Positions 2,591 through 29,937 of a DNA stretch of 29,937 bases are shown here, in pieces; the first letter of the stretch is position 1, and each line of letters opens with the position of its first letter. Where the stretch lies: positions 133,266-163,202 of the forward strand of contig NW_003314437.1 in the NCBI RefSeq assembly GCF_000143415.4, read 5' to 3'. The notes beneath the pieces are model-generated. The model saw nothing but the letters and a program-made list of their open reading frames with translations. It made no database searches and had not been told where the DNA came from. The stretch comes from Selaginella moellendorffii. Lineage: Eukaryota > Plantae > Lycopodiophyta. The position numbers were made by a program, and so were the translations under genes.

Positions 2591-2804
2591 TGTGAAGTGT
2601 GCATCTTGTTCTATGTATAAAACTTCAGTACAAGTTCAAGTTCATTCAAATTGTACAACTCGAAGAATCTTCTGGAGCTCTAGCTGCTTGATTCACGCAG
2701 GATGGGCTCAATAGAAACCAGAACGTTTTTTATTCCATGAGGCCAGGAGCACTGCAGCTTGGAATAGTTCCTGGTTCCCAATATAGCCACTGGGAATAAG
2801 GATA

Positions 2805-4245: not shown

Positions 4246-4596
4246 ATATAAAAATAAACATGCTAAAACAAATTAAGAAAAAGAAATAGTTTAAACAATT
4301 ATAGTTACAAATACATCTTTTCAAATTGAAAATATTCTCTACTACTCCCAGCGGAGCTGGGATCCCTGCTAGTCAAACTCTTTATTTAAAGTTGCTATTT
4401 TGGCATCAGCGTCACATATTCCATTTCTAGAATATCCATTGTTACTTATGGTAGACTAGCAAAAGTCCCAGCTACGCTGGGAGCATTGTGTTTATTTCTG
4501 ATATTTTAATAATTTCAAAGAGTTGTAAGTGTATTTGTAATTTTTAACATAATCATAATTATAAGATATATAGTTAAACATTTTTATATTTAAATA

Positions 4597-7500
4597 TAGA
4601 AGAAAGAGTATCTGATTGATTTGATACTACATGTTTAAACATATTGAACATATTTTTTGTTTTAAAAATATCGTATATAGTAGACATAATAAAAAAATTC
4701 ATCAATGAATACCATCTTTATACAACTAAATGTTTAAAATCATTTGAACCTAGTGCATTATATTATCTTGGATCAGTTGTCTAATTGCCTTTTATATGTA
4801 TTACAATATCACTTATGCCTCCTTGAATATTTGTTGAATTTAACACTTCATTCTCTATTTCTTACAATATTACAGACCCATGTCGTGCTACGCTGGGAGC
4901 ATTGTGTTTATTTCTGATATTTTAATAATTTCAAAGAGTTGTAAGCATAATTGTACTTTTTAACATAATCATAATTATAAGATATATAGTTAAACATAGC
5001 ATAATCTTTATATTAAAAATCTCTTCTACAATTGATTCTATCACCAACAAACATCATAACATAATAAATATAACTCAGCACATTATATCATATTTAAAAT
5101 TGATTATTGAAAGAAGTCTTGGATTTCTATAAATCAAATTTCTCATTGTGGGATCCCATGGGTAGATGAGTCATTTGTTTGATAACTACTTTTTTATTTT
5201 CTTTTAAAAATATCTATATAATTGATAAACTTATTATCATTTGATGATTTATTAATCTCTATAATTTTTTATCTTAATAAAGTATGCATTACATAATTCC
5301 ACTCAAATATGATGATGTTAAACATATATTTAATATATATTTAAAAACTCATCTAAAGTGCACACATCTTTTAAATTTAAAAAATATAAACATTGTTATG
5401 GAGTTTCTCTTTTCTTCATTTCAGACTGAAAGTTTTGGAATTGCATGATAATAAGTGAAAGATGTTAGCTTTATGTGTTATATTTTCTTTTAAATTTTCT
5501 AAATATTTCACATATTTACCATTGATATTCCCTTTTTACCTAATATTTATATTCATGCATTTTGAGAGTAATATTTAAAATATAAATTATTTTATTATAT
5601 ATCATAAACATTATTTCTGTATTTATTTTTATAAATCTGAAATAAGATTATTGTCTCCCTATATTCATGTATTTATATTTAAAATTAAGGCTTTATAACA
5701 CTGTTATGAATGATGAAATTTTATGATGATAAATGAATGGTAAGGGGTAGAGTAGGGTTTGATGATATATAATATTTTCTTTAGGCTAGAACTATAATAT
5801 ATCAGAAAATTCATAAATGGTATATAAATAGGTTTAATATAATATAATTAAATTTCTTTATATGGTCTATGTACTAATGTTGTCTCAATCATAGAAGCGG
5901 TCATTTGAACCTGGTGCATTGTATCATCTTGGATCAGTTATCTAATTGCTTTTTATATATATATTAAACCTCCTTGAATTTTTTTTGAATTTAACACTTG
6001 ATTCTCTATTTTCGACAACATTGTGAATGCATTAGCATAGGGATTTATCTCTTTTAATTATTTATCAAGATCACCCATTAGTTGCTCTTTGCATTTAGAA
6101 TTGTGTTTGTTTTTCATTTTTATTTGTATTGCTTGAGAGGTATCTAAAATATATAATTGTGAATATTTTTCATTATTTAGTTTGAAACTTCCAATATTAT
6201 GTTAAATTTGTTCATATATCTTAAAATAATTATGGCCACCTACTGCAATCTCTTCAATGTTTGCACCCATTGATGCTGCACTACTATAATTTTGTATTAA
6301 ATCTTTAAAATTAATAGTCTTTGGAGAAAGCATGGAAAAGGATGTAATTTTTCAGTTGCTATTCTCCTGTCACAATTACAATTGAAAAACTTTTCCACCA
6401 TAAAAAAAAAGGGCCTTACAAAGTATGCATTGTTTTTCCATCTTACCAAGAATGTTGCTCACATTTACCATTTTCATTCTCTGACATTAAACCCATTTTT
6501 TATTTTTTCTTTGTTTTTTTTTTTTTTTGGCTCACTGTGCTACTAACAGTAGTTACAAGAACACAAGAAATCATATGACAGGAATTGCCAGTAGTAGACA
6601 GACTATCACCAATTTCACATAGATAGGTCACTGAAGAAGAACTTTCCAGGTGTGTACTCGCATTCAACATTGGCAATTTATGAGGAGCTTTCAACGCTTG
6701 CCAAGTACCAAAACAGGCACTCGGCTGTGGATTACGCAGTGGCTGTCTTCATGTTCACACATGATGGAAACATGGCTTCATGCTATGTTTATAGTTTCTC
6801 CAATTCTCTAACTTTCGTTCCACTTTCCTCCAGGCAAAAGCTTATTCGGCTCATTGATAGCTATGGAGCTGGGAATATATCTTGGGATGAATTTGTGTTT
6901 CAAGTGAAAATGCTGCACAAAGTGAGGACAGGTCCAGCTCTAAGAGTTTTCCCGCTTGTCACATATGCAACCAGGAAACAGATTGTCAAAATATTAAATA
7001 TTCTTCGTGCTTTGGGATGGGACAACAGCAGCACCAGGGAAATGTAGAGCGCTCTTTAATATGTACAAAATCCGGGAAAGTTTTTTCATGGCACAGTATG
7101 TAGATTCAACATGATTGAAATTTTCCATGTATCAATGCACAAATTATTAGTGTAAATAACAGACTTATTACACATTCATCAATGAATCTACTCATATTGA
7201 GTTGCTTATTAGCTCAGATATAGTCTCATATTTGTGCAATATCATAAAGTTAAAAATCATAAGATTATGATAAAAGTATAACTTATTTACAAGATATAAT
7301 AGCTGGAGCTATTCAACTCTTTTATTTTAAGTTATAAAATATATCATTTCTATAGTCACTACTTTATTTACTTTTAACTTTATAGTATATCTTTTATTGT
7401 GTGTACTATATACCATCTTTGTAAAAAAAATTATGTTTAATTTTAATAATGTAGCATTGAATTAATCAGATACTCTTTGTTCTATAAAGTTTTTATTCTA

Positions 7501-7998
7501 TAGAAGAAAGAGTATATGATTGATTTTGATAATACATGTTTAAACATATTGAACATATTTTTTGTTTTAAATATATCGTACATAGTAGACATAATAAAAA
7601 AATTCATCAATGAATACCATCTTTGTACAACTAAATGTTTAAAATCATTTGAACCTAGTGCATTATATTATCTTGGATCAGTTGTCTAATTGCCTTTTAT
7701 ATGTATTACAATATCACTTATGCCTCCTTGAAAATTTGTTAATTTTAACACTTCATTCTCTATTTCTTACAATATTGTGAATGCATTAGCATAGGGATTT
7801 ATCTCTTTTAATAATTTATCAAGACCACCCATTAGTTGCTCATTACATTTAGAATTGTGTTTGTTTTTTGATTTTTATCTCCGTTGCTTGAGCAGTATCT
7901 AAAATATTTCATTGTGAATAAGCTGCATATATTTCATTATTTGGTTTGAAACTTCCAATATTTTATATATATATAAAATTAGAGCCACCTACTGCAAT
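4597..7998 (+). repeat. AT-rich internal direct repeats: 4597-4870 / 7501-7776 and 5901-6249 / 7646-7998
   Basis: Near-identical stretches visible by eye. The core tcatttgaacct.gtgcatt..atcttggatcagtt occurs three times (~4740, ~5901, ~7646). Confidence 0.85.
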
Positions 7999-8035
7999 GA
8001 TCAATGAGGCTCTTTCGTTTAAATATATTGGATGA
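4887..8035 (-). mobile_element. Probable inner, 3'-truncated B-type Helitron within B1
   Basis: Second B-type 5' end A|TCATCCAATATATTTAAACGAAAGAGCC at 8035-8008. Second copy of the B1 sub-terminal region with only half the hairpin and no CTAG at 4887-4997. Pairing these two ends is inferred. Confidence 0.5.
6625..6935 (+). pseudogene. O-fucosyltransferase-family (GT106, RRT-like) C-terminal fragment
   Basis: SLKKNFPGVYSHSTLAIYEEL..YQNRHSAVDYAVA..VFMFTHDGNMA, then a short intron, then RQKLIRLID..GNISWDEFVFQVKMLH. No N-terminus; internal deletions. Confidence 0.8.
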
Positions 8036-8394
8036 TTAGTGAAAGATCTCGATTCAACTTTGATCTTTATTTATATATCAATAAACGTTTTACAATTCTT
8101 TCTTTACATTTCAACTCCCTCGTTTTCCTTTTCGTTCCAACTTGTTTTCATTCTGCAGTTGTTCTCGGCAGCCACTGAAAATGTTTTCCAGCCATAGACA
8201 TAAGAGATGTTGATGTCCGGAGAATACAAAAAAGAAAAAACGCAAGCAAATGAAGTTAGTAATGGTGAAAAGGAAATAGGAACTTACTGCTGGCATTTTC
8301 TTTTAAGCCACTCGAACTTTCTTCATGCCCAAGTTGTTCTCAAGGCCGGGAGCACTCCTTTTCACACCACTCCTTCACAGCTTGTCGGTCTTAA

Positions 8395-8850
8395 TGCTGC
8401 AATTTTTGACAAATCCATGGGTGTTGCAGAACCTGATCGAACCTGAACCTGATTGGTCCTTGCTTGTTTGCAGCGGAGGATCTCCTTTCTAAGATGTTGG
8501 CCGTGGATCCGAAACAGAGGTCGCCCCCTGTCACACGAGATCAAATGCTTCCATTGGCTGGTATCCTCCCTTTCCCAGCGTCTGGTATAAAATTGCTCCT
8601 AGCCCCCACATTTCGATGGCTGCCATGTAGAGCTCCAATCCTTGTTCTCCACCACCTCAGCTGCCATGTACTTCGCTGTTGTGATATCTCCTAAAGGTGC
8701 TGATCACCACTTGTCATGCATGTTTAGCTTGGAAAGAATGTTGTCGAGCTTGAGATTCTGGTGAACCACGCCCCTCAAATAAATCTCTTTGAAGGTCTTT
8801 ACCAGCTGCTTGATGATTCTGGCTGCTTTCTCCTCACCAATCTTCTCGCA
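8395..8850 (-). pseudogene. CAMK-group (CDPK/PPCK-like) Ser/Thr kinase C-lobe fragment with internal micro-inversion
   Basis: EEKAARIIKQL..GVVHQNLKLDNIL, YMAAEV, IEMWGLGAILY and FDQVLQHPW on the minus strand; AEDLLSKMLAVDPKQR on the plus strand (8473-8520). Confidence 0.8.
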
Positions 8851-8893
8851 AATATGCTATATTTAAAAGACCAAATAATTATGGAATAACGCC

Positions 8894-9332
8894 TTAAGAA
8901 GGGAAGGCAAAATTTCCACCAATGAACACAACCACTGGAGGAAAAATGCCCGTGCCCTGTCCAAAAGGAGACTCGGACAACACCACAAAGTCAGCAAACT
9001 TTCCTGGCGTCAGTGACCCAACCAAATCCTCCAATGCAGCTGCATACACAGCCAAGGATGTGTACCTGTGAATCCAAAAACAAAAACTGCATTTCAGTTT
9101 CTCATCTGTTATCTCTTACCCTGCCACTACGTCCCATGCAGAAATCCTTTCCTCGGGATGACTCCAGCCTGAAGTGTTCTCTCTACGGCTGTGCGGATTC
9201 CTCCAAGTGGATTCACTGCTACCACCTTGAGACAAACCATTCATGTAACGCCGAAGAAAAAGTATTTGACAGGCTTACAGACCAGTCAGATCCTAGAGCA
9301 ACCACACTACCGTTTCCGAGGAGGGAAATCAT
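8894..9332 (-). pseudogene. LAF3: Amidohydrolase-3 (LAF3/YtcJ-like) last three exons
   Basis: SLLGNGSVVALGSDWS | VVAVNPLGGIRTAVER..PEERIS | YTSLAVYAAALEDLVGSLTPGKFADFVVLS..*. One frameshift; 5' part absent. Confidence 0.85.
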
Positions 9333-9342
9333 TGCACTTCAC

Positions 9343-9495
9343 CAGTTTATACCCCTCTTTGTGGCAAGCCTGTAGCTTTTGCGTTATAGAAGTGTAAAGT
9401 AGGGACCATGTATTAGCACCCACTCTGCAAAAGAGAGTCAATTAGGAAGGATTCTAGCAGTGTATCACCTTTTCACGTCCGTGTTCACAGAAGAT
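9343..9495 (-). pseudogene. ZDP: Polynucleotide 3'-phosphatase (ZDP/PNKP-like) two-exon fragment
   Basis: VNTDVKR | 44-nt intron | VGANTWSLLYTSITQKLQACHKEGYKL-gt resembles ZDP GADAWSLMYPSIPEKLQSL..GYKLVIFTN. Confidence 0.75.
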
Positions 9496-9679
9496 TATAA
9501 AGAAGGTAAACCAACAAAAAAAAGCACATTACTAAAAAACAATCTTTTGTATTGTGTAGTCAAAGAAGAAACAACTGATAATCCAGAAGAACAAAAAAAA
9601 GGTGAGGCTGTGTAATAAAGACTTTGTGAAACTTTAATAATTATAGGAAGACCAGGTATGGATATCCATGGTTTCTTTG

Positions 9680-11305
9680 AACTCCTCTTTGCTCAGTTGG
9701 CCTTTACTACAGGCTTTTGGACGTCCTGTGGTTTCCTCCTGTGATGTTTTCCTTCCTGGCATTAGAGAGTAACTGAGGATGTAAGATTGCACTGCCTGAG
9801 CAAAGCCAGGCTTGTACGAGAAGAGCAGCCCACGGAAGAATCCGTAGTTGAATACGTCGCTTACTCTAGCCTCGAACATCTTCTCGCCTAGCGGCTGAAC
9901 GTGAGCTTGAAACTCTGTAGCATGAGTTTGACAGGGAAAATTTGGAGAGGTCCAAGGTTTTCTGCAGATACCTCCGTGAGATGAAACCAAGCTCTTGTCC
10001 GCATCCCGTTGCTTGTCTAGCACGAATGGCGTGGCACGATACTCTTGCCGCCTTCTCTTAAGTGCCTTACGCATGGATAGCTTTGGTTCTGATGGATCTT
10101 TCTCCCTCAGCATCTCTTCACAGTAAAACGGCAACCATATTGTCAAGAATGGCAGCAATGTCAATAAAAGAAGAAGCCAACCTGTGTCGAGGAAATACAT
10201 GTCATCCAGAGCTTCAAGCTCTTCATTACATCCCCCATAGACGAATAATATGCCTCGCTCTGCGTCCACAGAATCTCCTGCAAGGGAGAAACCTGGAGAA
10301 GGCCTGGAACCAAAGGGATTCAAAGTTGCCCAAACACCAGTCGCTGCAAAATACATAAAAGGCCCATGAGAGACCAACAGGAAACAAATCTACCTACAAG
10401 CGTGATACTTTTCATGGCTGATTGTTGTATGCCCGGCTCTTGGCATCAGCTCGGCACCAGTCCTCTTTACCTCCCGCCATGCCATTGTTTCTGGAAACAC
10501 AAATGAATTCGCAAGTTTAAAACCAGCACAATGTATGTACCTGTGTCCAGAATATGAATGTCGTATAGATAGGCATTACCACCGTCCTCGCCACCCATGA
10601 CAACGAAACAGTTCTTATAAGAAGAGCAGGTATGGCTATCCCGAGGAATAGGCGAGACTCCAGCGGTAGAAATCTTCTTCCAGACAAAAGTATCTGCAGG
10701 GGAAAAAGAGTTTAGAAGAAAACCAGGAAAGATAACAGGATATTACTCGTGTCCAAAACATGGAGGAGGGATCGCTGGATTTCCCACATCCCCCAAACAC
10801 GAACAGGTTGTCACCGATGAGAGACGTGCTATGTCCTTCTCTCGGAGCAGGAACATCACCAAAAACGTCGGGTTTCCCCCAGGTGTTGGTAACTGCATCG
10901 GATGATAAGAACAAGAAAAAAAACATCAATAGAACTCGGAGCTTACCATTATCCAAAACAAAGAGATCGTCGAGTGGGCTGGTTCCATCGGTACCACCAA
11001 ACACATAGAGCTTAGACCCGACGGCCGTGGAGCTGTGGCTGTCCCGAGGAGAAGGGTGCGTTCCTTTTATCACAGGCTTGCTCCAGGTGTACATCCCTGC
11101 GCGATCCCACCAAAAACATGATCAAAACCTTTTTTTTCCGGAAAACCCAGAAGATGAAACTTATACCAATGTCGAAGACGTGAGCATTGTTGGTCTGGCA
11201 CTCGTCCCGGCCGCAGCCACCGAAAATGTAGATGAGATTCCTGACCACATTGCAGGTGTGGCCGCTGCTGCTGGAGCTGATCGCTGGATCGGGTTTATAG
11301 CGCTG
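9680..11305 (-). pseudogene. Kelch-repeat (galactose oxidase/kelch superfamily) gene, nearly full length but disabled
   Basis: Multi-exon GHTCNVV..IFGG, PRDSHS..VFGGTDG, PREGHS..VFGGCGKSS, PRDSHTC..MGGEDG, PRAGHTT, YGGCNEELEALDDM, FEARVSDVFNYG. Frameshifting deletion near 10765 and loss of part of repeat 5 near 10405. Confidence 0.85.
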
Positions 11306-11758
11306 CAAAATAGAAATCCCTCTCAATGCATTAAAAACACAACTGAAGAACAAGGAAGTGAACCGTGGACAAAAATTTCTATTTTTTCTCTTGGTTCCAG
11401 CCTCAAGCACCTGGAACAAACAGGAACTTTAAGCCTCGAAAGAGAATAGCGAAGAGCAAGATAATGAAAAACCTTGATTCTAGTCGTCGATGACAACGTG
11501 AATCCCCTCGTTGTCCGAGACGTCGTCCCTGTCGTGCGCTCCATCAGAGCCTCTTCGCCTTTCACTCCCAATCCTCATCGCATTTCCGAGCAGAGCACAT
11601 CGATCTACTGAATGCACCTGCGCAGGCGGATGCCGGCAGATTTGTTCCCCGCGTAAGTCTGGAAGGCATCGAGCCTGTTCTCGCTGATCATCGAGCACAA
11701 CTATGGCGACACAGAGAAAGCTGTGAGCCTCTCAAACCTTTGCAAACAGAGAAACAAA

Positions 11759-11760
11759 CA

Positions 11761-11818
<58 letters not shown>
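11759..11818. repeat. Compound microsatellite (CA)10(GA)20
   Basis: Directly visible. Lies inside a minus-strand GT..AG intron-like interval (11822-11738). Confidence 0.97.
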
Positions 11819-11822
<4 letters not shown>

Positions 11823-11924
11823 CTTCCTGCAAGCGATGATCGACGCTCTCTCCTCGTGCTCACGCGCCCTAAAAGAGAATTGAAATTTTTTATGATACCA
11901 AAAGTCACGGCTCTCCATTGTTTA

Positions 11925-11940
11925 ATCTCAGCCGTTAGAT
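11925..11940 (-). promoter_or_regulatory. MSA-like element ATCTAACGGCTGAGAT in the B-type Helitron 5' region (identical copy at 16349-16364, +)
   Basis: Fits the YCYAACGGYY MSA (MYB3R) consensus and is conserved in both B copies. Function unproven. Confidence 0.4.
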
Positions 11941-12629
11941 TTTGGCATATGCCCAGAATAAGTGACGCCAGTATATGCTATTATTATACCAGCTCTTTCG
12001 TTTAAATATATGAGTATGATGCTCCCAATCGGACGGACTAGATCTGTGACGCTCCAAAAGAACGGTGAAGATCGTTACATGGTGGCAAAAACGGTGGCAC
12101 CCCTTGAATTCTAGATTCGTAGCTTTGGAAATTTTAGGTTTAAGGAGACCAAATTTATGGAGCAAGATCCTACAGTTCCTTACAGTTCTTGACAGACCTT
12201 GGATATTGAAATATGAAGCCAGGTATGGTGAATTTGTAACTACTTTTCTTCTTTTGTACACTAATTCCATGTTGTTTGTTGTAGATTTTCTATCGTTACA
12301 GAATTGAAAGGCAGAGAGTTTATGGTTGCGGTATTCTTGCAGTGGTCTGGGTGGGATAAAATCCTAAAATTTTGTGTTGTATAGTTTTACAGTTTTGGAG
12401 CCGATCCAAATATCCAGTGTTTGCTCGAAATTTCCCAGCGAGGAGCACACTGGCGATGCAGCAGCTTTGTTGGCGCTCTCAAGTTATCATCACTGCAGCC
12501 ACTGATATGAACGTGACTGGCCGGTCAATTGATCAGATGCCATAGCTGAGCGCCAATGCCATACCATTTTAGGGGTTCTTCCTCCTCCAAGTTGTCCAGA
12601 TAGCCGGCTGAGTAAATCCCAGGCTGTTG

Positions 12630-14244
12630 ACTGGGAATCCACAGCAGCATGGCAGTCGCTGCCTTCCTGACATTCTTGAGTTTTCTCAACAAGTGGTACC
12701 ATGAGACGGTGCTCAATCCAGGACAGCCTCCACTTCCGGCTGCTTTTCTCAGAGGCTTCAAGTCTGGAAGACCGACTACATTGCAAAGTTAAGTGATCTT
12801 GTACTTTCTTTCGCTTGTTTAACTGTTGCTTTTTCTTGGTTTCAGGTGCAATCGAGTAGGTTTTACAAGGCGCGCGTTTCTGTTCAGGCAGCATGCAAAT
12901 TTGTAAAGACAGCTTTGAGACAGGATGGCCGGAGAGCACTGTTACGCTCATGAGCCACTTGAAGCTCCAAGCCCACTGTGAACAATCCCAAAGCTCTCAA
13001 GCAGTATGTGCCCCTCATCGTCAGCAACATAAAAGCGTGCCTTGAGAGGTGGTCTATGCAGGATAAGATCGTTCTTCTTACCGAGATGAGAAGGGTAAGC
13101 AATTGTCTTAGTTTTCTTGTTGACACTGGTTTTTTCTGATATGACAGTTCACGTTTCTAACTGTCCTCTACATTTTATATGGGAAAGACTCCAGTCTCGA
13201 CATGGAAGAGACTTTCTCCTTCTACTACATTGTCAACCAAGGCATTCAGGCTCTCCCCATCAACTTTCTCGGCACTGCCTACAACAAAGCCATATGCATT
13301 GTACATAGCTTTGTGACGTTTTCCCATTTTTCAGGCCGAGGCAAAAGCTCATCAAGCTTATCCAGAACGTGATCAACCAGCACTTCTGGAAAGCCGCAGA
13401 AACAAGCATTCTTTCGTTGCTCATGGATCAGCTGGATGGCGCTGGAAGACGCTCATATCATAGACATGCTCAACATGTACATGAATGCTGGTCACGACTC
13501 AACGGCTCATGTCATCATGTGGCTGATGATTTCCTAAAGCAAAATCCTGATGTGTTTGAGAAAGTGAAGGTAAACCTTTGCAGTTTCATACAAACTTCCT
13601 TCATACAATCTTTCTTCTTTAGGCCGAGCAAGACAACATTGCTAAAGTCATTTCAGAAGGGGAAATGATCAACCTTTTAGACATCAGAAGGATGCGCTAC
13701 CTATCTAGTGTCAGTCCATTTTCCCCTGTTTTTATTCCTGAATTTATTTTTTGTTTTTGCAGGTTGTCAATGAAACACTGCGACTTGCAAAAATATCTCC
13801 AATGGTCTTTAGAAGAGCCTTGTTAGACCTCGAGTTTAATAGTGAGTCTCCTTCTCTCAAGTGATGTGCAAGTGATTTGGAAGCGTGGCTAAGACAAGTA
13901 CATATGGATCCACCCTAATCCGGAAAAGTTCAATCCAGCTGGGAGGTACGAGATTCTCACCCATGCTCTGTAACTCTGGCTGGGATTTTTCACTAGAAAT
14001 ATGGAGCATCTCCATTCACGTTCACACCCTTTGGGATGGGAAATCGAACTTACAAACTTGCCAAGCTTCAAATCTTCATTGTAGTCCATTACTTCGTTAT
14101 TACAGGTAAAGATCTATTATTTGTGCCATTATCCTTTATCTGGGGTTTGAGGTGGACTGCCTTGGATCCCAACAGCAAATTTCTTACTTGCCACATCCAA
14201 GACCACGAGACTTCTATTCTGTAAGAGTTTCAAAACTTCTGTAG
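12630..14244 (+). pseudogene. KAO: Cytochrome P450 CYP88 / ent-kaurenoic acid oxidase-like pseudogene, copy 1
   Basis: AAFLRGFKSGRP, FETGWPEST, IIDMLNMYMNAGHDSTAH (I-helix), VVNETLR (ExxR), HMDP..PEKFNP, PFGMGNRTY (heme Cys lost), YLPHPRP. Many deletions and frameshifts; introns retained. Confidence 0.88.
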
Positions 14245-17760: not shown

Positions 17761-17795
17761 ACAATTTCAAGTTTTACAAGTTCAATAGTTGGCTT

Positions 17796-18490
17796 GTAGA
17801 GCTTGCTGATTTGCTTGAAGCTGCCAAGAGCTCTTGCTTTGCTGCACAGCACCTGTTTTTGGATCTTGCCAGTCACGGTTTTGTCCAAGGCCGCAAGAAT
17901 GACGACGCTCTTTGACACCATGAACTTCGGTAAACGCTGTTGACAGAACGAGAGTATCTCCTCCTTGTTGCTTCTCACGCCATGCTTGAGGGACACAAAT
18001 GCACATGGAGACTTGCCCCACTGCTCGTCTGGCGGCACCACCACAGCACTGCTGGATGCCTGGAAGAAAAAGAAGCAAACTTTAACGAGAAACAAAGAAG
18101 AAAAAACTCTCCTTTTACCTGTACAAGATGCTCTCCACTTCCAGGCTGCTAATGTTCTCCCCTCCAGAAATGATAATATCCTTGGCTCAATCCTTGATCT
18201 TGATGTATCCATCGGGATGCCGAACTGCCAAGTCCCCGGAGTGGAACCATCCTCCTCTAAAGCTCTCCAGCGTTGCCTCTGGATTGTTCAAGTACCCCTT
18301 GTTCCCACGCATGCAAACTTCGCCAATGGTGACACCGTCCTTGGCAACCGGTTCCAGAGTTTTGGAGTTGAGCACTTGTAAGCTGTCAAGGCAAACGTAT
18401 TTCATGCCCTGCTGAGCCTTGAGCCTGGCCTGCTCATCAGGTGAAAGAATGTCCCATTCGGGATTCCACTCGCACATTGTGCATGGAGCA
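17796..18490 (-). pseudogene. Acyl-activating enzyme (peroxisomal AAE clade, AAE1/7/11/12-like) 3' fragment
   Basis: [91 protein letters not shown]..ISKL. Internal stop at 18187-18189. Confidence 0.9.
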
Positions 18491-18598
18491 CAGTGCATGA
18501 AAGAGTGGGAAGAGGCTAGCTGCCTATTTTTCTTTCTATGCACTTCCTTTATGGTTATGTCCAGTTTATTTTTGAGTAGGTGGTATCTGTGGTTATAT

Positions 18599-19424
18599 NN
18601 NNNNNNNNNNNNNNNNNNNNNNNNNNNNNNNNNNNNNNNNNNNNNNNNNNNNNNNNNNNNNNNNNNNNNNNNNNNNNNNNNNNNNNNNNNNNNNNNNNNN
18701 NNNNNNNNNNNNNNNNNNNNNNNNNNNNNNNNNNNNNNNNNNNNNNNNNNNNNNNNNNNNNNNNNNNNNNNNNNNNNNNNNNNNNNNNNNNNNNNNNNNN
18801 NNNNNNNNNNNNNNNNNNNNNNNNNNNNNNNNNNNNNNNNNNNNNNNNNNNNNNNNNNNNNNNNNNNNNNNNNNNNNNNNNNNNNNNNNNNNNNNNNNNN
18901 NNNNNNNNNNNNNNNNNNNNNNNNNNNNNNNNNNNNNNNNNNNNNNNNNNNNNNNNNNNNNNNNNNNNNNNNNNNNNNNNNNNNNNNNNNNNNNNNNNNN
19001 NNNNNNNNNNNNNNNNNNNNNNNNNNNNNNNNNNNNNNNNNNNNNNNNNNNNNNNNNNNNNNNNNNNNNNNNNNNNNNNNNNNNNNNNNNNNNNNNNNNN
19101 NNNNNNNNNNNNNNNNNNNNNNNNNNNNNNNNNNNNNNNNNNNNNNNNNNNNNNNNNNNNNNNNNNNNNNNNNNNNNNNNNNNNNNNNNNNNNNNNNNNN
19201 NNNNNNNNNNNNNNNNNNNNNNNNNNNNNNNNNNNNNNNNNNNNNNNNNNNNNNNNNNNNNNNNNNNNNNNNNNNNNNNNNNNNNNNNNNNNNNNNNNNN
19301 NNNNNNNNNNNNNNNNNNNNNNNNNNNNNNNNNNNNNNNNNNNNNNNNNNNNNNNNNNNNNNNNNNNNNNNNNNNNNNNNNNNNNNNNNNNNNNNNNNNN
19401 NNNNNNNNNNNNNNNNNNNNNNNN
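18599..19424. other. Assembly gap (others at 24070-24169, 26458-26557, 28242-29138)
   Basis: Runs of N. Confidence 0.99.
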
Positions 19425-20672
19425 GATTGCAACAAACTTCTAAAGATGAAGCAATATGTAAAATATGTAAATATGCAGGACCTATAAAGGAACACATCAC
19501 CCAGCTTCACCTTGGACAAGACACGTTCCAAGTAGCTATACCTTCGCATTTTGTTGATCAACTGTATGGAACAAAGGAACTTTGACATTCCTTAAAAAAA
19601 ATAAACCTTTGCCTTTACATCTGTGCCTTTACTCTTTGATTTCTGATGAAGCTTTTATGCAGAATTGGTCAGAGTCTAGAAAAATGCACTGGATCTTTGC
19701 ACGGCAACATGGGGAACATTTGAAAGAACCCAGCACTTGAGGTGATATCCTCATTAAAGTTTGTGATTTGTTTATCTTGAGGCATCTTTTTTTAGGCACT
19801 TCGAGCATTGGCTTACATGGGAACTTTCATTGATGGGGGCAATGATTCCATTGAATATATTCCCAACCTTTCAACATCAGAAGGTTTGTAAATCAGCTGT
19901 TTACAAACATTCCTAATTCTCCCACTAATGTATTACATACCTGGAAAGAGATGTATATAATGGCATTGCGTAGATCACACTACTTCGTACACTCCAATCA
20001 AATATACAGGCCCACTGTGTTGAGGCACGTTCGTGACAAAAACTCATGGATTATACGTACTCTATTCGCTCAGATAACTACAACTTAATGTTCTGCTCAG
20101 CAAGCAGCCAGAAGAATATCTGGTCTGTCTCTAGAGATTCCAAAGTTGTGTCAAATGGTCCAAGACGACAGAACTGAAGCCAAAGTGATAGATGTTAACA
20201 ATCTCGATGTGCCTTTCATTGGTGATCCAATGAACACCAAAGTGCATATCCTTCAAGGTTAATATAATTACAGAATATGTATTTAAAAATCATGATATAG
20301 AAAAGGCTGAACTTCTTCTTACAATCGAGTAAGCTTTCCCATGCTTTCACACAAAACTTTTAACATAACCACCTATGAAATCTCATGCTTGAATATTTTT
20401 TTGTTAATAATAAAGAAACAATATAAACGAAAAGCCAACAACTGAAATATATATGAGACTCCCAGATTTGTCTTCTGATATTTCTTTTATAAAAAATAAA
20501 CATAAATGTAAAGCACTACGACTACTAATGTTAGTTTTGTCGAAATACATTACAAATTAGTTATTTAGTTACAAATTTTTGGTAACTAATTACATTACGT
20601 ATGTATGTATATAACATTATTACATTTTTTTTCTCTGTTTCATGTTAAGGGAGAGAGTTCTAAGAAGCTGAG

Positions 20673-21340
20673 ATGCCAATTAAGGACAGCGGCCACTGCT
20701 ACTGATGGTCTTTTCATGCCAAGGTGACACACAAAGGGAAACTTGTATTCTTTGAAATAGGCACAGCTGGGTGTGTTATGTCAGTTGATGTTGCCAATGC
20801 ATAAAGTTCTGAAATACGTATTGTTGGGTTTGGCGAGAATGCAAAGCATCTTTCAAGTGAGATTGAGCAAGGCAATGTCTATATATTTTCAGGGAACAGT
20901 GGTGTACAGTGCTCTAAACCAGCATATACACCATATAAATCAAATTGGGAGATAAAAGCAAGCAAGACTATGGAGATCAAGTGTGTAGAGGATGATCTAC
21001 GTATTCCAAATGTTGTTCTTAATAGAACGAGTGTTTTAGATGCTTCTAAGCTCGGCCAAGAGACATTTGTAGATGTGATTGGCAGTGTAATGTGGATTGG
21101 ACAAACATTTCTCCTAAGGATTCTGGAGCATTCATGAGAAGGAGGATGCTTTCTTTGAGTGATGAATTGGGCCATAGTATAGACATGTGTCTGTGGGATT
21201 CAAAGGCTGAAGATGAAGGTTCAGAAATTGAGGAGAAACCTGGACGAGGGGAGAGGCCTATTGTATGTGTGAAGGGCAGCCAGATTTCAGATTACAATGG
21301 CAAGTCCATTTCAGTCACAGGTGCAAGTATTGCAAGATAA
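20673..21340 (+). pseudogene. RPA1: Replication protein A 70 kDa (RPA1)-like OB-A/OB-B fragment
   Basis: WSFHAKVTHKG..SVDVANA*SSEIRIVGFG..IEQGNVYIF..NWEI..FVDVIGSV..RRRMLSLSDELGHSIDMCLW..IVCVKGSQISDYNGKSIS. Stops and a frameshift. Confidence 0.85.
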
Positions 21341-23378
21341 AAGTTGGTTAGGGTTATCTTTATAGTACATGGTTTCAGAATGAAATGACTTCCTCTTTGG
21401 AAAACGGTGAGAGCCAGGAAACACGCAGGTTGCATTTACATCAACCTTTGAGAATCCCTCGGAAAGAAGTTTCAGGTGAGATTTACAGCCCAGATGCCTA
21501 TTATAAATTTGAAATGCTTTACAAATGTGTGTAAAATGATTCCTGTAGATTATAAAAGCAGAGAAGAAGTGGGACTAGAAGAGATTGCAAAAGAGCAAAG
21601 AGAAAAGGGTAAGAGTTATCCAAACAAAAATTAATAATAAAAAGTTTCCTACTTGTAACATTTTCTTTTAGACATGATAAATGAGACCCGAAGAAATGGG
21701 TCTTGTGACATGGAAGTTGACAACAAAGGTAGTGAAATTTATATTAAAAACTAAAGCTATCATTATCATCATCAAACTCTTTATTTAAAGTTGCTATTTT
21801 GGCATCGGCGTCACATATTCCATTTTTCGAATATCCATTTTTACTTATGGCAGATGCTCTCAATTCAACGATCCAGATTTGTGACGCTCCAAAGCAATGG
21901 TGCGGATTGTTACATGGTGGCAAAGAGCTTGGTTTTAGGTTTAAGAAACAGTTAATATGGCTGTCCGTATCTGGAGCATATTGGATGCTAAAATTTTATT
22001 GTGGGAGAAGAAGCGCATCGGATGAGAAGTAGAACTTTCCCGTCCCATATACTGTAGAAGAAGGTGACATCAGAGGTGATTTTTGTTTCAGAATTTCTGG
22101 ACGATACAGGTATTGCTCAGAAGAAAAAACAAATTTACTGCTTCTCTAGGTACTCTAACATTCAAGCGAATCCAGGGTGCCTTGCAGCATTTTTCCAGTC
22201 CAGTGAAGCTGATCAATGGCATCGCAACAAAATCCAGTGAGTTTTGTTTTAGAAAAAAAAATGACTACCATCTTTGGATATGCCTGTACAGCTTGCTTTG
22301 TGTAGCTCTAGGAGATGTAGTCGAGGTTCTGGTTGGAATAGGTGGAGAGGCAAGAGCTCAGGCTGGGAAGCAACATCCTTGGAAGCTCTCCAAACAGGAT
22401 CCGATTGATGCACATGTCTGCCTGGGTGGAGGTGCGCTCTCTGTTCCTCATTACCAGAGCTCACTGCCACAGATTCTGGAGAGTGCAAGAGACTGTTGGA
22501 CTTCCAGGGAGTAGTTAGTGGAAAAGGTAGCTGACCTGTTTCATCACTTTGTTTCATTTCTGTGCTGCTGCAGAGTGACAACTTGCACACCAAGATAGAG
22601 GAGGATGAGAAAGAGAAGCTGTAGAAAAAGTAAGCCCACATCCCATCTCTGTGGCCATGTGTCTGAATCCATCTGTGTTGCAGGGAAGAGGAACGTCAGC
22701 TCCAGAAGAAGAAAAAGAGATGAGCAAAAGGCCCTTCCTGTCTGTCATTTTTGGACGAGGTCGACAGTGACACTGATGAAAGGGAAATGACAGTGATGAA
22801 GGCGAAATTGACAGCGCTGGTATGGTTTGGCAGCTTCAATCAAATCCAGTAAAAGATGAGAGGTGGCAGATGAACAGAAAAATAAAAAAACTGGGCAAGT
22901 TTGGGATCTCACCAGTATGGGGAAGACTGGGTAATGCTTTGCCTGTTTGTGTTTTTTCCAACCATGCTGTTCGTGATTCCAGCGGAAGTTCTCAAAGGCC
23001 AAGTTAATCTTTTGAGAGTCGAGCTAGGAGAAGTTCAACTCACAAAGCTCTTGGGAGGAAAGAGGTGGATCAGATGCCATGGTAAACACGTAAACCTCCT
23101 ATTTTCTTTCATTTTTTTCTTCAGGAATTCCATCTCTTGTTGCCAAGCCGCTGGGGTGTAGGGAATTAAAATGCCTGATTTGGTAAATTCATGAAGCCTT
23201 GTTCCGCTTTTCCTGACGAACACTGTAGGTACTCCAAAGGCCTCAGCTATGATTCTATACTGGACTGGGACAGCAACGCTGCTTCTTGATCTTCCTCGCA
23301 TTCGTTATTATTCTTCTCAGAACTAGGTAGCCACAATTTTCACTAAAATCTAAAACAAGCACTGACTAAAGTCACACA

Positions 23379-24790
23379 GATCCGAGTTCATTAAAAATCC
23401 TGGACCGCATAAGGTGCTGGTATAGTAGCATAAATTTTTTTTTTTATGATGCTAATCAAAATCTCTCTCTTTTGCACTTCTTTTTAGGTGAAAGTTATTC
23501 TTTTTTCTGACACAGAAGAGCGTGCATTTCCATTCAGAAGAGAAGCGGCCAAGAAGGACTCCGAGTTGATGTCTTTCGGATGTGTTTTGTGGAGGAAAGA
23601 GGAAGCTTCGATTTTGAAAAGCCGGTAGTTTTAGTGATAATCACGTGAATTGATTCATGCTTTTCGCATGTGGAGCAGGTTTGGATTAGAGTTGGCACCG
23701 GCAGTAGTTTTCATCAAAGATCCAGGTGTCCAGCCCATAACTGTTTATGGTAAAAATCTTCTTTGAGATGATTTCTTTCACTTTGCGGGTAAATTGCAGG
23801 TAAATTGCGTGACTCCTTCATGGAAACTGTGGAAGAACATAAAGTTCATGGTAAGTACTATGTAGGCTCTTCCTTTTTTTGCTATCTTTTGAATTGCAAT
23901 TTGATGTGCATGCTTTTATTTCTTCCTCAGCTGCAAAGCATCACGGCTTCCAAACTTGGATGTGATCCCGCGGACTTCTCTGCAGCTGGAAAAGATGTAG
24001 AAACATGGTACTGCATTGTGGTTGCTGGAAGGCCTGGTTTTCAGCTTGATCAACTCTGCAGTGTAAGATNNNNNNNNNNNNNNNNNNNNNNNNNNNNNNN
24101 NNNNNNNNNNNNNNNNNNNNNNNNNNNNNNNNNNNNNNNNNNNNNNNNNNNNNNNNNNNNNNNNNNNNNGAATTGTGCAAGATGAGCTCGTGTAAGTGAG
24201 AACATTGATAGCCAAAATTTTGCTGCTGCCACTGCATTTGAGCCTATCATGGCTTGACGGCAAAATCCAAAAGGTGGATACTTATATAGCTCGCTGGTTA
24301 ATTAATCCTTGTTTTTGTGCAGAAATTTTGCTATTACTGCCTCCCTTCTGAACCCGTCCATAAGACTTGCAGGCCGAGGCAGTACCAAGTGCAAGACGTG
24401 GCAAGGATTTTGATGATACGTTTTAGAAGAGATCCAACATCAAAAGCCGGTGGTGAAGAGAATCAATACCTGGTGGCGTTTGAATTATGAGGAGCCAGAT
24501 TTAGCATCGATGCTTATTGCTCCATACAGTGATGCAAATGAAATCTCGGAGGTTGGTTGGTTTCATTTAGACTTTTTTCTCTTTTCTTTGCTATACCAAA
24601 GAGTTTTTCTGCAGGTTTTATCGTGAATTTCTAATAGTGTTCATGATGGCGACACAAATGAAATTCCATTCTTTGTAAGTGTTGTGGTGTTTTGAAAGTT
24701 TGGAGAACTCTTGACTGTGGGATTTTGTTAGAATACTAAGTCGATGCCTGCGTTAATACCCGAGGAGCAAGCAGTCTTGATGCTCTCTTC
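23379..24790 (+). pseudogene. DNAJC16-like ER co-chaperone (thioredoxin-like central region), multi-exon internal fragment
   Basis: VKVILFSDTEERAFPFRREAAK, APAVVFIKDPGVQP, LPQLQSITASKLGCD..TWYCIVVAGR, WLDGKIQK|KFCYY, DGDTNEIPFF, PALIPEE. J-domain absent; stops present. Confidence 0.8.
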
Positions 24791-25530
24791 AACACGGAAT
24801 GCTGTGAGTGGAATGAGGAGATTTATAAATAAAAGTTTGTTTAAAAATTACAGATTGTGCATGTTATTAGCTTCTATGCACTATTTGGCAGAACAAAAAG
24901 GGAACACTACATTTAATAGAGTATGCATGACTGTAAGCTTTTAATTTTGTTGATGTTTCTTGTAAAAAAAATTTAAATTGAGCTAAAGGACAAAAGAAAA
25001 TGTAATTCAAAATAAAGATATTACATAAACAATAAAAAATTTAAAAAATATTTTAGAAGAAACTAAATTTTCTTTTCAAGATAAGAGCTTCAAATAGACT
25101 TGTTACATAGTTAGAGAATTTTTTCTGAGAGTTCATATCAACTTTCTTTCTAAGCATTATTGGTTGTACAAAACTTTTGGTTCCATACTAGAGGGATGGC
25201 TGGCTGGATCCCTCCTGGGTTGAGAGGGAACAAGGCCCCATAGTACTAGCAATCACAACTTGAACAGATGTGTAGGAAGCTGGTATATCTATCACATGTA
25301 GCCATAAAGATTCGAAAACTACAACAACTTTTGCTTGAAGCACTTGAAAAGAATGTGGTAGACAGCAACAAACCTGTACAACGTCGTGAACAGCCGGATG
25401 TCTGCCAGAGTGAGCGAGTTGCCACACAAAAATCTCAAGCACTGAAGGTGTTTCTCAACAGTTTCAAGTTGTTCCCTGTATTATAGAATTAAAAATGAAC
25501 AATTTTAGAATGGATTAGCAATGGGTTTAA

Positions 25531-26292
25531 AGAAGATAGCAGAAAAAGAGATGCTAAGAGATAGCGAGCTCTTGATAAAGAAGAGATTGAGCTTGCAATC
25601 TTGATAAGCAGGATTGAACCACTTACACAGATATCCCAAGAAAACAAAAGTCGTGATGTAGCACACTAAGGACACAGCAAGCGAGGCATTATACCTGTGA
25701 AGTGTGCATCTTGTTCTATGTATAAAAGGTAAAGAAACGAGGAAGAACATTACCAGAACTGACTCTCTTTGGCAATCCATGCAGCATTCCAGTTGTATGT
25801 CGAGAGTCTTCCTGCCAGAAGAACAAAGAAACTATGGTTATAAATCCAAGAGAAAAGCACTAGATTTACTGTCAGCATCCACAATGTCATTGGGAAGAAG
25901 GATGAGGCAAAGCACAGTGAGACCAGACCAGACGATAAGAGCTTGATCATTCAGTTGCCACGATGCCAAGAGTCCCTGTGATTGCTTTGGTACTTCCCAA
26001 AGCTCTCATGTGTAGAACAGCTTGTGTGCCAAACAAATCCTTGCCAGGCGAGTAAGGGAAGTGATTAATCCCTGGAAGCGAAAAAAAAGTAGGTGTTGTT
26101 GCAAATCACAAGAACTTACACGGGATTTTCTCACGTGAGGTCATGCAGCATCCATGCGAGCAGCAAGGAGAGTGCGAAGAGGCTGCAATACCCGATTCTT
26201 GCCAATCGGCAAGAGATGCTGCTCACTAATCCCTCACAAGCCTGGCAAGCGTAAGCTGTGCAGCTGGACGCTAGACAAAATGTCGCCCACAT
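25531..26292 (-). pseudogene. Serinc N-terminal half, captured fragment
   Basis: ATG at 26292: MWATFCLASSCTAYACQAC..ISCRLARIGYCSLFALSLLLAWML; RDSWHRGN*MIK; YNWNAAWIAKESQFW|YNASLAVSLVCY..WFNPAYQDCKLNLFF. Truncated at 25531. Confidence 0.88.
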
Positions 26293-26749
26293 CATCAGAT
26301 GCTCGCTGGATCAAGAAGCAAAACCTTAGAATTTGATTACATTGTCCCTCGCTTTAGATTTTTTTTTATAACACTAATGCCATGTTGTTCTGTTGTAGAT
26401 TTTCTATCGTTACAGAACTGAAAGGCAGAGAGTTTATGGTTGCAGTATTCTTGCAGTNNNNNNNNNNNNNNNNNNNNNNNNNNNNNNNNNNNNNNNNNNN
26501 NNNNNNNNNNNNNNNNNNNNNNNNNNNNNNNNNNNNNNNNNNNNNNNNNNNNNNNNNAGGAGCGCACTGGCAATGCAGCAGCTTTGTGCACTGGCGCTCT
26601 CAAGTTATCGTCACTGCAGCCACTGATATGAACGTGACTGGCCGCTCAATCGATCAGATGCCATATCTGAGCGACAATGCCATACCATTTTAAGGTTTCT
26701 TTTTCCTCCAAGTTGTCCAGATAGCCAGCTGAGTAAATCCCAGGCTGTT

Positions 26750-27837
26750 CACTGGGAATCCACAGCAGTGTGGCAGTCACTGCCTTCCTGACATTCTCGA
26801 GTTTTCTCAAAAAGTGGTATCATGAGACGGTGCTCAAGCCGGGACAGCCTCCTTCAGCACCGGGATCTTTGGCAACGTGGCTGCTTTTCTCAGAGGCTTC
26901 AAGTCTGGAAGACCGACTACTTTGCAAAGTTGAGTGATCTTGTACTTTCTTTCGCTTGTTTAACTGTCGCTTTTTCTTGGTTTCAGGTATAATCGAGTGG
27001 GTTTTACAAGGCGTTTCTGTTCTGGCAGAATGCAAATTTGTAAAGACAGCTTTGAGACAGGATGGCCGGAGAGCACTGTTGTGCTCATTGGACGAAATTT
27101 GTTTGCAGGGTTAACTGGAAAGAGCCACTTGAAGCTCCAAGCCCGCTGTGAACAATCCCAAAGCTCTCAAGCAGTATGTGCCCCTCATCGTCAACAACAT
27201 AAAAGCGTCCCTTGTGAGGTGGTCTACGCAGGATAAGATCGTTCTTCTTACCAGTAAGCAATTGTCTTAGTTTTCTTGTTGACACTGGTTTTTTCTGATA
27301 TGACAGTTCACGTTTCTAACTGTCCTCTACATTTTATATGGGAAAGACTCCAGTCTCGACATGGAAGAGACTTTCTCCTTCTAGTCCGTTGTCAACCAAG
27401 GCATTCAGGCTCTCCCCATCAACTTGCTCGGCACTGCCTACAACAAAGCCATTTGCGTTGTACATAGCTTTGTGACGTTTTCTCATTTTCAGGCCGAGGC
27501 AAAAGCTCATCAAGCTTATCCAGGACGTGATCAACCAATGCTTCTGGAAAGCCGCAGGAAACAAGCATTCTTTCGTTGCTCATGGATCAGCCGGATGACA
27601 AAAAAGAGGTGCTGGAAGACGCTCATATCATAGACATGCTCAACATGTACATGAATGCTGGTCACGACTCAACGGCTCATGTCATCATGTGGCTGATGAT
27701 TTCCTAAAGAAAAATCCATGATGTGCTTGAGAAAGTGAAGATAGACATTTCCAATTTCATACAAACTTTCCTTCATACAAAATTTCTTCTTTAGGCCACA
27801 TCCAGACTATTCTGTAAGAGTTTCAAAACTTCTGTAA
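26750..27837 (+). pseudogene. KAO: CYP88/KAO-like pseudogene, copy 2 (large 3' deletion)
   Basis: 26371-27935 is colinear with 12258-14350. GWPESTVVLIGRNLFAGL, YMNAGHDSTAH present; ExxR, PERF and heme exons deleted at 27794-27797. Confidence 0.88.
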
Positions 27838-29937
27838 TTAAAAAAGAAAAAAGTATTCTACTGAATTGTACCTCATACAAGATGATACACTATGTATTCT
27901 CATGCCTCCACTGTTCTAATTCATCTCTGTCGCTTCTGTATTTCGAAGGAAACACTATTTATAAAAACTCTACATTTATGGTTACCCTTTTTTCCAATGG
28001 ACCTAATGACGACATGTTCAAGATAGAGACAAACTGGTAGGTATTCTTAAAGAACCATAGAACTGAACACCATCTCTTTAAGGGCAATCTATGAGGCGCT
28101 TGTGAGGCTCTGAAGTGTTAACCTCCTCTGGATATCTTTCAATAACGAGAAAAAACCTTTAACCTATGAAAGGTACTTTTTCACTGCTTCTTTCATGTTT
28201 TATGGAGTCAAGTTACAGCTTCTGGAATTCTATGAGCAGCANNNNNNNNNNNNNNNNNNNNNNNNNNNNNNNNNNNNNNNNNNNNNNNNNNNNNNNNNNN
28301 NNNNNNNNNNNNNNNNNNNNNNNNNNNNNNNNNNNNNNNNNNNNNNNNNNNNNNNNNNNNNNNNNNNNNNNNNNNNNNNNNNNNNNNNNNNNNNNNNNNN
28401 NNNNNNNNNNNNNNNNNNNNNNNNNNNNNNNNNNNNNNNNNNNNNNNNNNNNNNNNNNNNNNNNNNNNNNNNNNNNNNNNNNNNNNNNNNNNNNNNNNNN
28501 NNNNNNNNNNNNNNNNNNNNNNNNNNNNNNNNNNNNNNNNNNNNNNNNNNNNNNNNNNNNNNNNNNNNNNNNNNNNNNNNNNNNNNNNNNNNNNNNNNNN
28601 NNNNNNNNNNNNNNNNNNNNNNNNNNNNNNNNNNNNNNNNNNNNNNNNNNNNNNNNNNNNNNNNNNNNNNNNNNNNNNNNNNNNNNNNNNNNNNNNNNNN
28701 NNNNNNNNNNNNNNNNNNNNNNNNNNNNNNNNNNNNNNNNNNNNNNNNNNNNNNNNNNNNNNNNNNNNNNNNNNNNNNNNNNNNNNNNNNNNNNNNNNNN
28801 NNNNNNNNNNNNNNNNNNNNNNNNNNNNNNNNNNNNNNNNNNNNNNNNNNNNNNNNNNNNNNNNNNNNNNNNNNNNNNNNNNNNNNNNNNNNNNNNNNNN
28901 NNNNNNNNNNNNNNNNNNNNNNNNNNNNNNNNNNNNNNNNNNNNNNNNNNNNNNNNNNNNNNNNNNNNNNNNNNNNNNNNNNNNNNNNNNNNNNNNNNNN
29001 NNNNNNNNNNNNNNNNNNNNNNNNNNNNNNNNNNNNNNNNNNNNNNNNNNNNNNNNNNNNNNNNNNNNNNNNNNNNNNNNNNNNNNNNNNNNNNNNNNNN
29101 NNNNNNNNNNNNNNNNNNNNNNNNNNNNNNNNNNNNNNAGAAAAACTTGAGCTACCTTCTGCAGTTCCATAAGCTAAGGAGTCCTTGCTGGTACATCCAA
29201 GCACATGAAGTTCCTTGGGTGTTAAGTCTTATCAAGTGGTGGGCTATTCAATGAGCATGGTAAAAATTAAAAATAGGTTGAGAAAAAGGAGAAACAACAT
29301 GTCTTACAAATAGCAGATAGATTTTAAAAAAAAAGTTAGAATTTATGCTAGGGTCCTCCCATGATTAATTTAAATGATGATATTAAAAAATATCACAATA
29401 ATCCAGATAAATTCAAATAATACAGCTTTTTAATTATTGATAATGTAGATACTGAATAGTTCTATTACTAATGCAGTAATATTAATGGCATGCATTGGAA
29501 ATTGGGATTAGAGCAGTAATAAAAATGGAATTTTGTCACACATAATGACATCTTAACACTTCTATGACAATATAGATTTACTTCTTCTGGTAAGCAAAGA
29601 AAATCCATTATATCATTCACCATTATAGTGTTCAGAAAATGGTAATAATATCAATAATAAGCACTATTTTATTATAACATGATAATAATAAAACAAAATG
29701 ATCACATTATATATATAGCTTATCTTTTCTAAAACTTGCATTTTTTATCTATTTGCATTATTGTGCATTTATTTAGAGGTGAAGAGTAGCAAAATTAAGA
29801 TAAATTTAACTTTGTATACAATCAAAATTTCTAACATTGTAAAATTAGAAAAGAAGATGTATTTATCTTAGGTATACTATATCTCCCAGCAGAGCTGGGG
29901 TCTCTGCTAGTACTCATATATTAAACGAAAGAGCCCG

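Follow-up and report, generated by a model that had tools for sequence, protein, structure and literature searches.

Head-to-tail stacks of non-autonomous Helitrons meeting at 5' leaders in Selaginella moellendorffii

In a 238 kb sample of sequence from Selaginella moellendorffii, the 3' ends of Helitrons abut the 5' leaders of other Helitrons at fixed offsets, far above the rate expected from the number of A/T sites (the slash marks the point of insertion throughout). The sample includes a stretch of 29,937 bp (contig NW_003314437.1, positions 133,266 to 163,202), referred to here as the window, the DNA of which was found by self-comparison and direct reading to consist of two head-to-tail stacks of non-autonomous canonical Helitrons. 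The elements were designated H0, A1, B1 and B2 in the left stack and A2 and B3 in the right stack, and were mapped using self-comparison, pattern and hairpin scans and direct reading of the ends (Table 1). The stacks were probably built by successive insertions, all in the same orientation, into the 5' leaders of resident Helitrons, with the RepHel transposase using the leaders as landing sites.

Helitron 3' ends and the sequences that follow them

Two types of leader were distinguished in the window. The A-type begins TCAAACTC.. and the B-type begins TCATACTC.., and both start with TC, as is usual for canonical Helitron1 elements. All four 3' ends in the window terminate in CTAG, which fits the CTRR terminus of Helitron1, and the GC-rich hairpin CCCAGC-N3-GCTGGG is found 6–7 nt before the CTAG in H0, B1 and A2 and in a decayed form in A1. 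Insertion at A/T without a target-site duplication was seen for B1, by comparison with the empty site in A2, and for a pair of elements in two other loci (L008 and L009). None of the 20 open reading frames (ORFs) in the window matched Helitron_like_N or PIF1, and only host gene fragments were found. As neither a Rep nor a helicase domain was matched by any ORF, the elements are classed as non-autonomous.

An initial annotation of the window had described four 3' termini, each abutting the 5' region of another Helitron, and all four junctions are present in the sequence. H0 ends at +1 of A1 (4372/4373), its hairpin (CCCAGC-GGA-GCTGGG) being followed by seven bases and then CTAG, with the next base, 4373, opening the A-type leader. 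A1 and A2 both end (at 16272 and 29910, respectively) before +4 of a B-type leader, since the CTAG is followed in each case by TACTCATATATT.., which aligns with the B-type leader minus its first TCA. B1 sits after +83 of A1.

A1 resumes at 12020, past B1, and the uninterrupted site, GGCAGA/TGCTC, is present in A2 at 21854/21855. Because A2 provides this empty site, both the B1 termini and the A/T rule are established, and another uninterrupted A-type site was found in a contig from a public sequencing run. B1, which lies on the opposite strand, is a canonical A/T insertion that follows base 83 of A1 and left the target unduplicated. As it is antisense and away from the offsets that are most often hit, it looks like an ordinary A/T insertion outside the proposed targeting and was rejected as a targeting case. 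Hence, though the junctions themselves are real, the initial tally of four hits in leaders out of four was an over-count, as B1 appears to be ordinary and the two A-B junctions may represent one event (see below).

The census of hairpin and CTAG ends that the initial annotation had proposed for the whole genome was performed on the 238 kb sample, which is made up of the window and ten 15–22 kb pieces of other scaffolds (L001–L010). These extra loci were taken from assembly GCA_000143415.2 and were reached via gene models that match the Kelch-repeat cargo of B1. Ends were detected using a slightly relaxed form of the pattern CCCAGC-N3-GCTGGG-N6-8-CTAG, and the bases that follow were classified by leader type and offset. 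Among the 23 ends found, 17 abut a Helitron 5' leader. Eight are followed by TACTC.. and the TATTTAAA box, corresponding to +4 of a B- or C-type leader, and five by TCAAACTC.., corresponding to +1 of an A-type leader. In another two, (TCA)n separates the end from a complete leader (n = 1 in L004 and n = 4 in L006), and in two the end is followed by a leader at some other offset. Unrelated DNA, which the initial annotation expected behind most ends if its reading were wrong, follows only the remaining six. As a control, leader-type sequence was found downstream of 0.46% of the 40,296 A/T sites in the same sequences (p about 5e-30 for 15 of the 23 ends). When the ends were collapsed to distinct junction types, 9 of 15 were in leaders (p about 5e-18). 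Of all A/T sites in the window, only 3.1% fall within the initial 100 nt of a leader.

The leader hits are in the same orientation in all 17 cases. The A-type leaders have their sole A/T at the boundary, and all five hits on them are at +1, while the B- and C-type leaders, which begin TCA/TACTC, were mostly hit at +4. In total, 24 leader motifs were found, and nearly all of them have a Helitron 3' end or TCA stubs ahead of them. The same junction classes, exact to the base pair, recur on eight other scaffolds.

Stubs, nesting order and independent events

After a hit at +4, the first three bases of the resident leader would remain ahead of the newcomer as a TCA stub, and the resident would then start with TACTC directly behind the CTAG of the newcomer. 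In L004, a complete B element (9900–14282) is found between a TCA stub (9897–9899) and a C-type leader that starts from +4 (14283), and taking this element out restores an intact C leader. When A2 is taken out of the right stack, TCA is joined to TACTCAT.. and an intact B leader is obtained. Judged by this arrangement of bases, the first three of the leader have been displaced rather than lost, and it is this stub logic that decides for nested insertion over a concatemer. The possibility that the piece of leader behind the CTAG is the 3' tail of the upstream element was considered and rejected, as the matching TCA stub is on the other side of the insert both in L004 and at A2. If the canonical A/T rule holds, the upstream partner at a +1 junction is the later arrival, because the reverse order would need an insertion at G/T.

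Reconstructed in this way, B2 would be the oldest element of the left stack, beheaded by the insertion of A1 at its +4. H0 would then have landed on +1 of A1, and B1 later at +83 in the antisense direction. In the right stack the order would be an outer element, then B3, then A2, giving TCA-TCA-(A2)-TACTCAT. From the two stubs ahead of A2, two beheaded residents are expected behind that element, and indirect agreement comes from L007, a close paralogue in which the order is A, B remainder, C remainder (16364). In L007 the corresponding B element extends over 6.4 kb, up to +4 of a C-type leader. Of the two stubs, the first (21766) lies in DNA without a recognisable leader, and the outermost element of the right stack therefore landed elsewhere.

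Longer runs, (TCA)9 at 8695–8721 in L002 and (TCA)8 at 2644–2667 in L006, are found directly before Helitron starts and exceed plausible stub counts. Slippage probably extends the stub runs into a microsatellite. An odd end is present at 9730–9760 in L006, where the hairpin CCCAGC-ACA-GCTGGG runs straight into A-TCA-TCA and a B leader that is complete, the spacer and CTAG both being absent. A deletion, or an end formed aberrantly, may account for this.

Junction-anchored comparisons of the flanks were used to test for co-inheritance. The three junctions of an H element with +1 of an A leader (in the window, L007 and L010) have only 27–35 bp in common upstream and about 83 bp downstream, and with flanks this short the elements on both sides are therefore different. 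A-type elements with 97–99% identity over 400–500 bp are found at +1 of two A leaders, which share only 87% identity, and at +4 of a C leader. In L004, two A-type ends that are 96.5% identical are found on different leaders and at different offsets. Four junctions of a B element with +4 of a C leader share 600 bp upstream and only 30–96 bp downstream. Such patterns fit repeated insertion and not co-inheritance.

Insertion at leaders and the alternatives

In the mechanism we propose, RepHel would normally bind the 5' leader and nick the top strand at A/T to start transposition, and nicks made in resident leaders would double as the acceptor for the strand or circle of an incoming Helitron. Two landing positions would be available, namely the element boundary, between the host A and the T of the leader's TC (+1), and the A/T three bases inside leaders that begin TCA/TACTC (+4). 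Nicking of resident leaders at these positions would explain why the offsets are fixed and the orientation is single, and why stubs are present. Transposition from one 5' end through to a later 3' end would move composites and reshuffle their cargo, which would explain why members of a family are alike only at their short termini. The initial annotation had proposed RepHel-guided targeting of cognate origins, and its observational side stands in the 238 kb, where the enrichment, the anatomy of the junctions, the fixed offsets and the independence of many of the events were all seen. Recognition of the leaders by RepHel is what we infer to be the cause. Towards the more specific version, in which the Selaginella RepHel prefers any resident Helitron leader and cuts two phased A/T sites (+1, and +4 in TCA/TACTC) to give directional, self-assembling stacks, we lean only slightly. 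If it were true, stacking would disable the start of the resident, TCA stubs that can be counted would be left to seed a microsatellite, and the targeting of leaders would create multi-terminus composites as a source of new gene-shuffling families. It would also represent an origin-targeted, strand-specific mode of integration that is new for eukaryotic rolling-circle transposons.

Composites built with recycled termini, which the initial annotation had raised as another explanation, do exist in the sample. B1, for which an empty site is available, moved as one unit and contains an internal 5' motif at 8036, and the 'A' element of L007 mixes B1-like and A2-like segments. The junction 3' ends in the window and the other loci keep their CTAG, unlike the internal (pseudo) 3' termini of the maize helA type, which lack an intact CTAG.

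Several observations weigh against targeting of leaders by RepHel. The ten extra loci were picked via their common Kelch cargo, which over-samples a few related families. The A1-B2 junction at 16272 aligns with the A-B copy at 9902 in L007 across the junction, with an equal 82% identity on both sides, and A2-B3 is a 94–97% paralogue of L007. For these reasons the two A-B junctions of the window cannot be counted as two events, and some of the recurring A-B junctions at +4 may be copies of one event. In the young Helitron family of L008 and L009, copies that are 99.5–99.7% identical are found at two unrelated A/T host sites. This family looks to have been active recently without using leaders, and leader targeting is therefore not obligatory. 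On the plus strand of the window from 1 to 4372, where the 5' end of H0 and a TCA stub ahead of it are predicted, no leader motif or (TCA)n followed by TC was found, and no 3' end of B2 was recognisable before the right-hand stack at 21765. There is no RepHel gene among the ORFs of the window. Finally, 12019/12020 and 16272/16273 were not bridged among the public-run contigs listed, which are short.

The alignments with L007 also favour an explanation by copying, in which a few ancient chance nestings were followed by the spread of the junctions via composites or segmental duplications, without any targeting. The recurrence of the order H, A, B, C in the window, L007 and L010 points the same way, and composites with multiple termini are well documented in maize (PMC3288121). 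However, at least nine distinct junction types lie in leaders, and many junctions of the same type are alike only over the terminal 27–96 bp on one side. Divergence on the two sides of other junctions is very unequal, e.g. 98% versus 87%, and for several junction types the upstream and downstream flanks are already incongruent. We consider copying of this kind an unlikely source of the stacks.

A generic preference for DNA that is AT-rich, melt-prone or selectively neutral, with leaders not recognised as such, is about equally doubtful. It would not be expected to confine the hits to two fixed offsets and a single orientation, or to leave the other A/T sites in the same leaders rarely used (2 of 17). 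The window offers about 2,400 A/T sites and has long stretches of 22–30% GC in the bodies of the elements, and only B1 lies off the favoured offsets. What speaks for such a preference is that the leaders hold TATATTTAAA-type runs, that insertions within transposons are less likely to be purged, and that Helraiser, which integrates at A/T, favours AT-rich surroundings, above all on the downstream side (PMC4778049).

In plants and bats, Helitrons are known to form head-to-tail junctions and tandem arrays, and Helraiser moves via circles that carry a CTAG-TC junction (PMC5876387). The junctions could on that basis be relics of multimeric or 1.x-mer rolling-circle products, as proposed for tandem and centromeric arrays, but the neighbours here are not copies of one element and differ in both family and cargo. 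In most junctions the first three bases of the leader are missing, this TCA being found upstream as a stub, and junctions between A elements of the same family are very unequal in age across the two sides. Concatemers are thus highly improbable.

The least probable explanation is mis-assembly, with repeats collapsed or mis-joined in a gapped draft scaffold, because, although the window has four N gaps, one of them (gap 2) without a bridging paralogue, and window junctions that are unbridged among the contigs listed, the same exact junction classes are found on eight other scaffolds and in independent run X5, paralogues of matching length run collinearly across three of the four gaps and no junction touches a gap. 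In the X5 contig, another 3' end is joined to TACTCAT in the same phase (loose end at 16267). The region 11500–17400 is highly repeated, with more than 2,000 public-run contigs aligning to it.

Comparison with other systems and features of the individual elements

Nesting, head-to-tail junctions and insertion at 5' ends are already known from maize, bats and Fusarium. In the maize study (Dong et al. 2011, PMC3288121), Helitrons are described as inserting preferentially near or inside other Helitrons, a statement for which Du et al. 2009 and Yang & Bennetzen 2009 are cited, and 28.7% have multiple termini. Composites are proposed there to arise from nested elements that transpose from the outer 5' end. 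The likeness to Selaginella lies in non-autonomous Helitrons that carry gene fragments, are found near or inside other Helitrons and have multiple termini. In maize, 99 of 100 internal 3' termini had lost CTAG, whereas the internal 3' ends in Selaginella keep it, and no fixed offset at the 5' end is described in the text available, in contrast to the +1 and +4 hits with TCA stubs seen here.

A study of FoHeli elements in Fusarium and Metarhizium (Chellapan et al. 2016, PMC5148889) describes a Helitron inserted within a second one's 5' end or 2 bp away from it. Duplicated 5' termini that are short (<200 bp) were attributed to self-insertion, and three tandem copies to either double insertion at the 5' end or rolling-circle replication. 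While insertion into a second Helitron's 5' end is common to both systems, FoHeli is Helitron2-like, with other termini and target sites and few cases, within the same family, whereas several canonical families stack routinely in Selaginella.

Helraiser cleaves single-stranded DNA at the A/TC of the leader, and in vitro it is able to cut at an AT within the leader (PMC4778049). The bat and plant arrays and Helraiser resemble the stacks in having CTAG joined directly to TC, as at the H0-A1 junction, and in the use of an HUH enzyme and integration at A/T (PMC5876387, PMC4778049). Arrays and circles differ in that they join the ends of one element, whereas the partners in Selaginella differ in family and most junctions skip three bases. 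In IS200/IS605 elements (IS608) and IS91, HUH transposition proceeds via a single strand and there is a relationship between the target and the sequence that is cut at the element's own end. The likeness is a mechanistic analogy only, in that the end of an element can re-create a target, and these elements differ in being prokaryotic and having other target motifs, with IS608 also lacking a helicase fusion. The combination of exact +1 and +4 hits across several canonical families, intact internal CTAG and runs of TCA stubs was not found in the literature searched.

How Helitrons choose targets, acquire new ends and shuffle gene fragments is poorly understood, with only the A/T dinucleotide and an AT-rich context established. 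Base-exact insertions at Helitron starts would provide a natural record of transposase specificity, and multi-terminus composites would be easily explained by leader targeting. Such targeting also makes a testable prediction, for which leader-bearing and scrambled targets can be compared and nicking at +1 and +4 examined. In practical terms, a large number of S. moellendorffii 'genes' that hold Kelch and other fragments appear to be Helitron cargo, and the (TCA)n runs before Helitron starts are not ordinary microsatellites.

Table 1. Features mapped in the window, with a young Helitron family from two other loci in the last row
Feature	Position	Strand	Details
H0, 3' part of a non-autonomous Helitron	2671–4372	+	Hairpin 4347–4361, CTAG 4369–4372; pattern and hairpin scans
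A1 5' leader, bases +1 to +83	4373–4455	+	Starts TCAAACTC..; 94% identical to A2 21772–21854
B1, 7.56 kb non-autonomous Helitron, in A1 at A/T, antisense	4456–12019	-	5' end TCATACTCAT at 12019; 3' hairpin and CTAG end at 4456
Second 5'-end-like motif within B1	8009–8036	-	TCATCCAATATATTTAAACG.., with CTAA ahead of the motif; direct reading, alignment
Captured Kelch-repeat gene fragments, cargo of B1	9637–11428	-	Pfam Kelch matches
A1 remainder, decayed 3' terminus	12020–16272	+	Stem 16247–16261 spoiled by C-to-T; CTAG 16269–16272
B2 remainder	16273–21323	+	Opens at +4 of B-type leader (TACTCAT..); holds gap 1 (18599–19424) and an AMP-binding_C fragment (Pfam)
Two TCA stubs (A-TCA-TCA, 21765–21771)	21766–21771	+	Interpreted as the cut-off initial TCA of two leaders that were split when later elements inserted
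A2, non-autonomous Helitron	21772–29910	+	Mosaic cargo including a Serinc fragment; intact 3' hairpin and CTAG 29885–29910; contains gaps 2, 3 and 4
B3 remainder	29911–29937	+	Opens at +4 of B-type leader; runs off the window
Young family	L008 5987–13772; L009 7496–13782		5' end TCATCCTTCTATATTTAAAAG; at unrelated A/T sites

H0 is collinear from 2671 to 4375 with 4380–5857 in L006 at 85–90% identity, and the L006 element ends on (TCA)4 and a C-type leader. The homology begins at 2671 without a recognisable end, and a candidate start in L006, behind (TCA)8, is absent from the window. The 5' end of H0 may lie before 2671 or outside the window.

The A-type leader of A1 is also present in L001, L002, L007 and L010. 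A1 and A2 are alike at the leader and the 3' end and largely different in cargo. Matches between them were found for 12245–13625 with 26359–27797 (89–92%) and for 16115–16298 with 29753–29935 (89%). Compared with that of A2, the 3' hairpin of A1 has C-to-T changes on both arms; A1 is an old, dead copy, and the pattern is as expected from deamination of methylated cytosines in a silenced copy. The 5' part of A2 is 97–98% identical to 13478–15636 in L001 and its 3' part 95–97% identical to 6241–9902 in L007.

The start of the B2 remainder (16273–16441) is 81% identical to the B1 leader, and 16857–21323 is collinear with 16084–20634 in L006 across gap 1. A location for a B-type 3' end inside this gap was considered and rejected, as the L006 paralogue has a hairpin fragment without CTAG and a direct repeat on the flanks. 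Gap 1 (826 N) is bridged collinearly by this paralogue, which is 92% identical and has 820 bp in the interval (17904–18723). Gap 3 (100 N) is bridged by A1 (97 bp), L009 (99 bp) and L010 (100 bp), and gap 4 (897 N, 28242–29138) by 7170–8066 in L007 (897 bp). The N run of gap 4 exactly equals the L007 interval and that of gap 1 is close to the length in L006, so the gap sizes are either good estimates or were set from related sequence. For gap 2 (24070–24169), no bridging paralogue was found among the window and the ten loci. A mis-join there could mean that the two halves of A2 belong to different elements, with the claims about the junctions unaffected.

The cargo across the window consists of gene fragments, with Pfam matches to Kelch, Serinc, O-FucT (O-fucosyltransferase) and AMP-binding_C. 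A Serinc fragment is found with 97% identity at 2427–2622, in the H0 region, and at 25532–25727, in A2, and this cargo is therefore common to different members of the stacks. A Kelch ORF of 251 aa in B1 (9637–10389, minus strand) matches about 25 S. moellendorffii gene models, and the cargo, whose best relative is the S. moellendorffii 'rab9 effector protein with kelch motifs' (86% identity), derives from that gene. Several of the approximately 25 SELMODRAFT models that share this match are chimeric (Kelch with amidohydrolase, PurM-N or DCD). These annotated models look like Helitron cargo and not genes.

Paralogues of B1 were found in L004, L006, L007 and L010. The internal motif at 8036 resembles the 5' end of the young L008/L009 family and was inherited with the body of the B1 family, since L004 spans it at 93.5% identity. 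B1 also contains internal direct repeats that are 96–97% identical (4471–4581 with 4887–4997, and 4595–4871 with 7499–7776), and these include a second copy of the sequence adjoining the 3' hairpin, without a terminus. A unit of 121 bp (11367–11487 in the window) is present once in B1 and in four to five tandem copies in the L006 paralogue (10090–10859).

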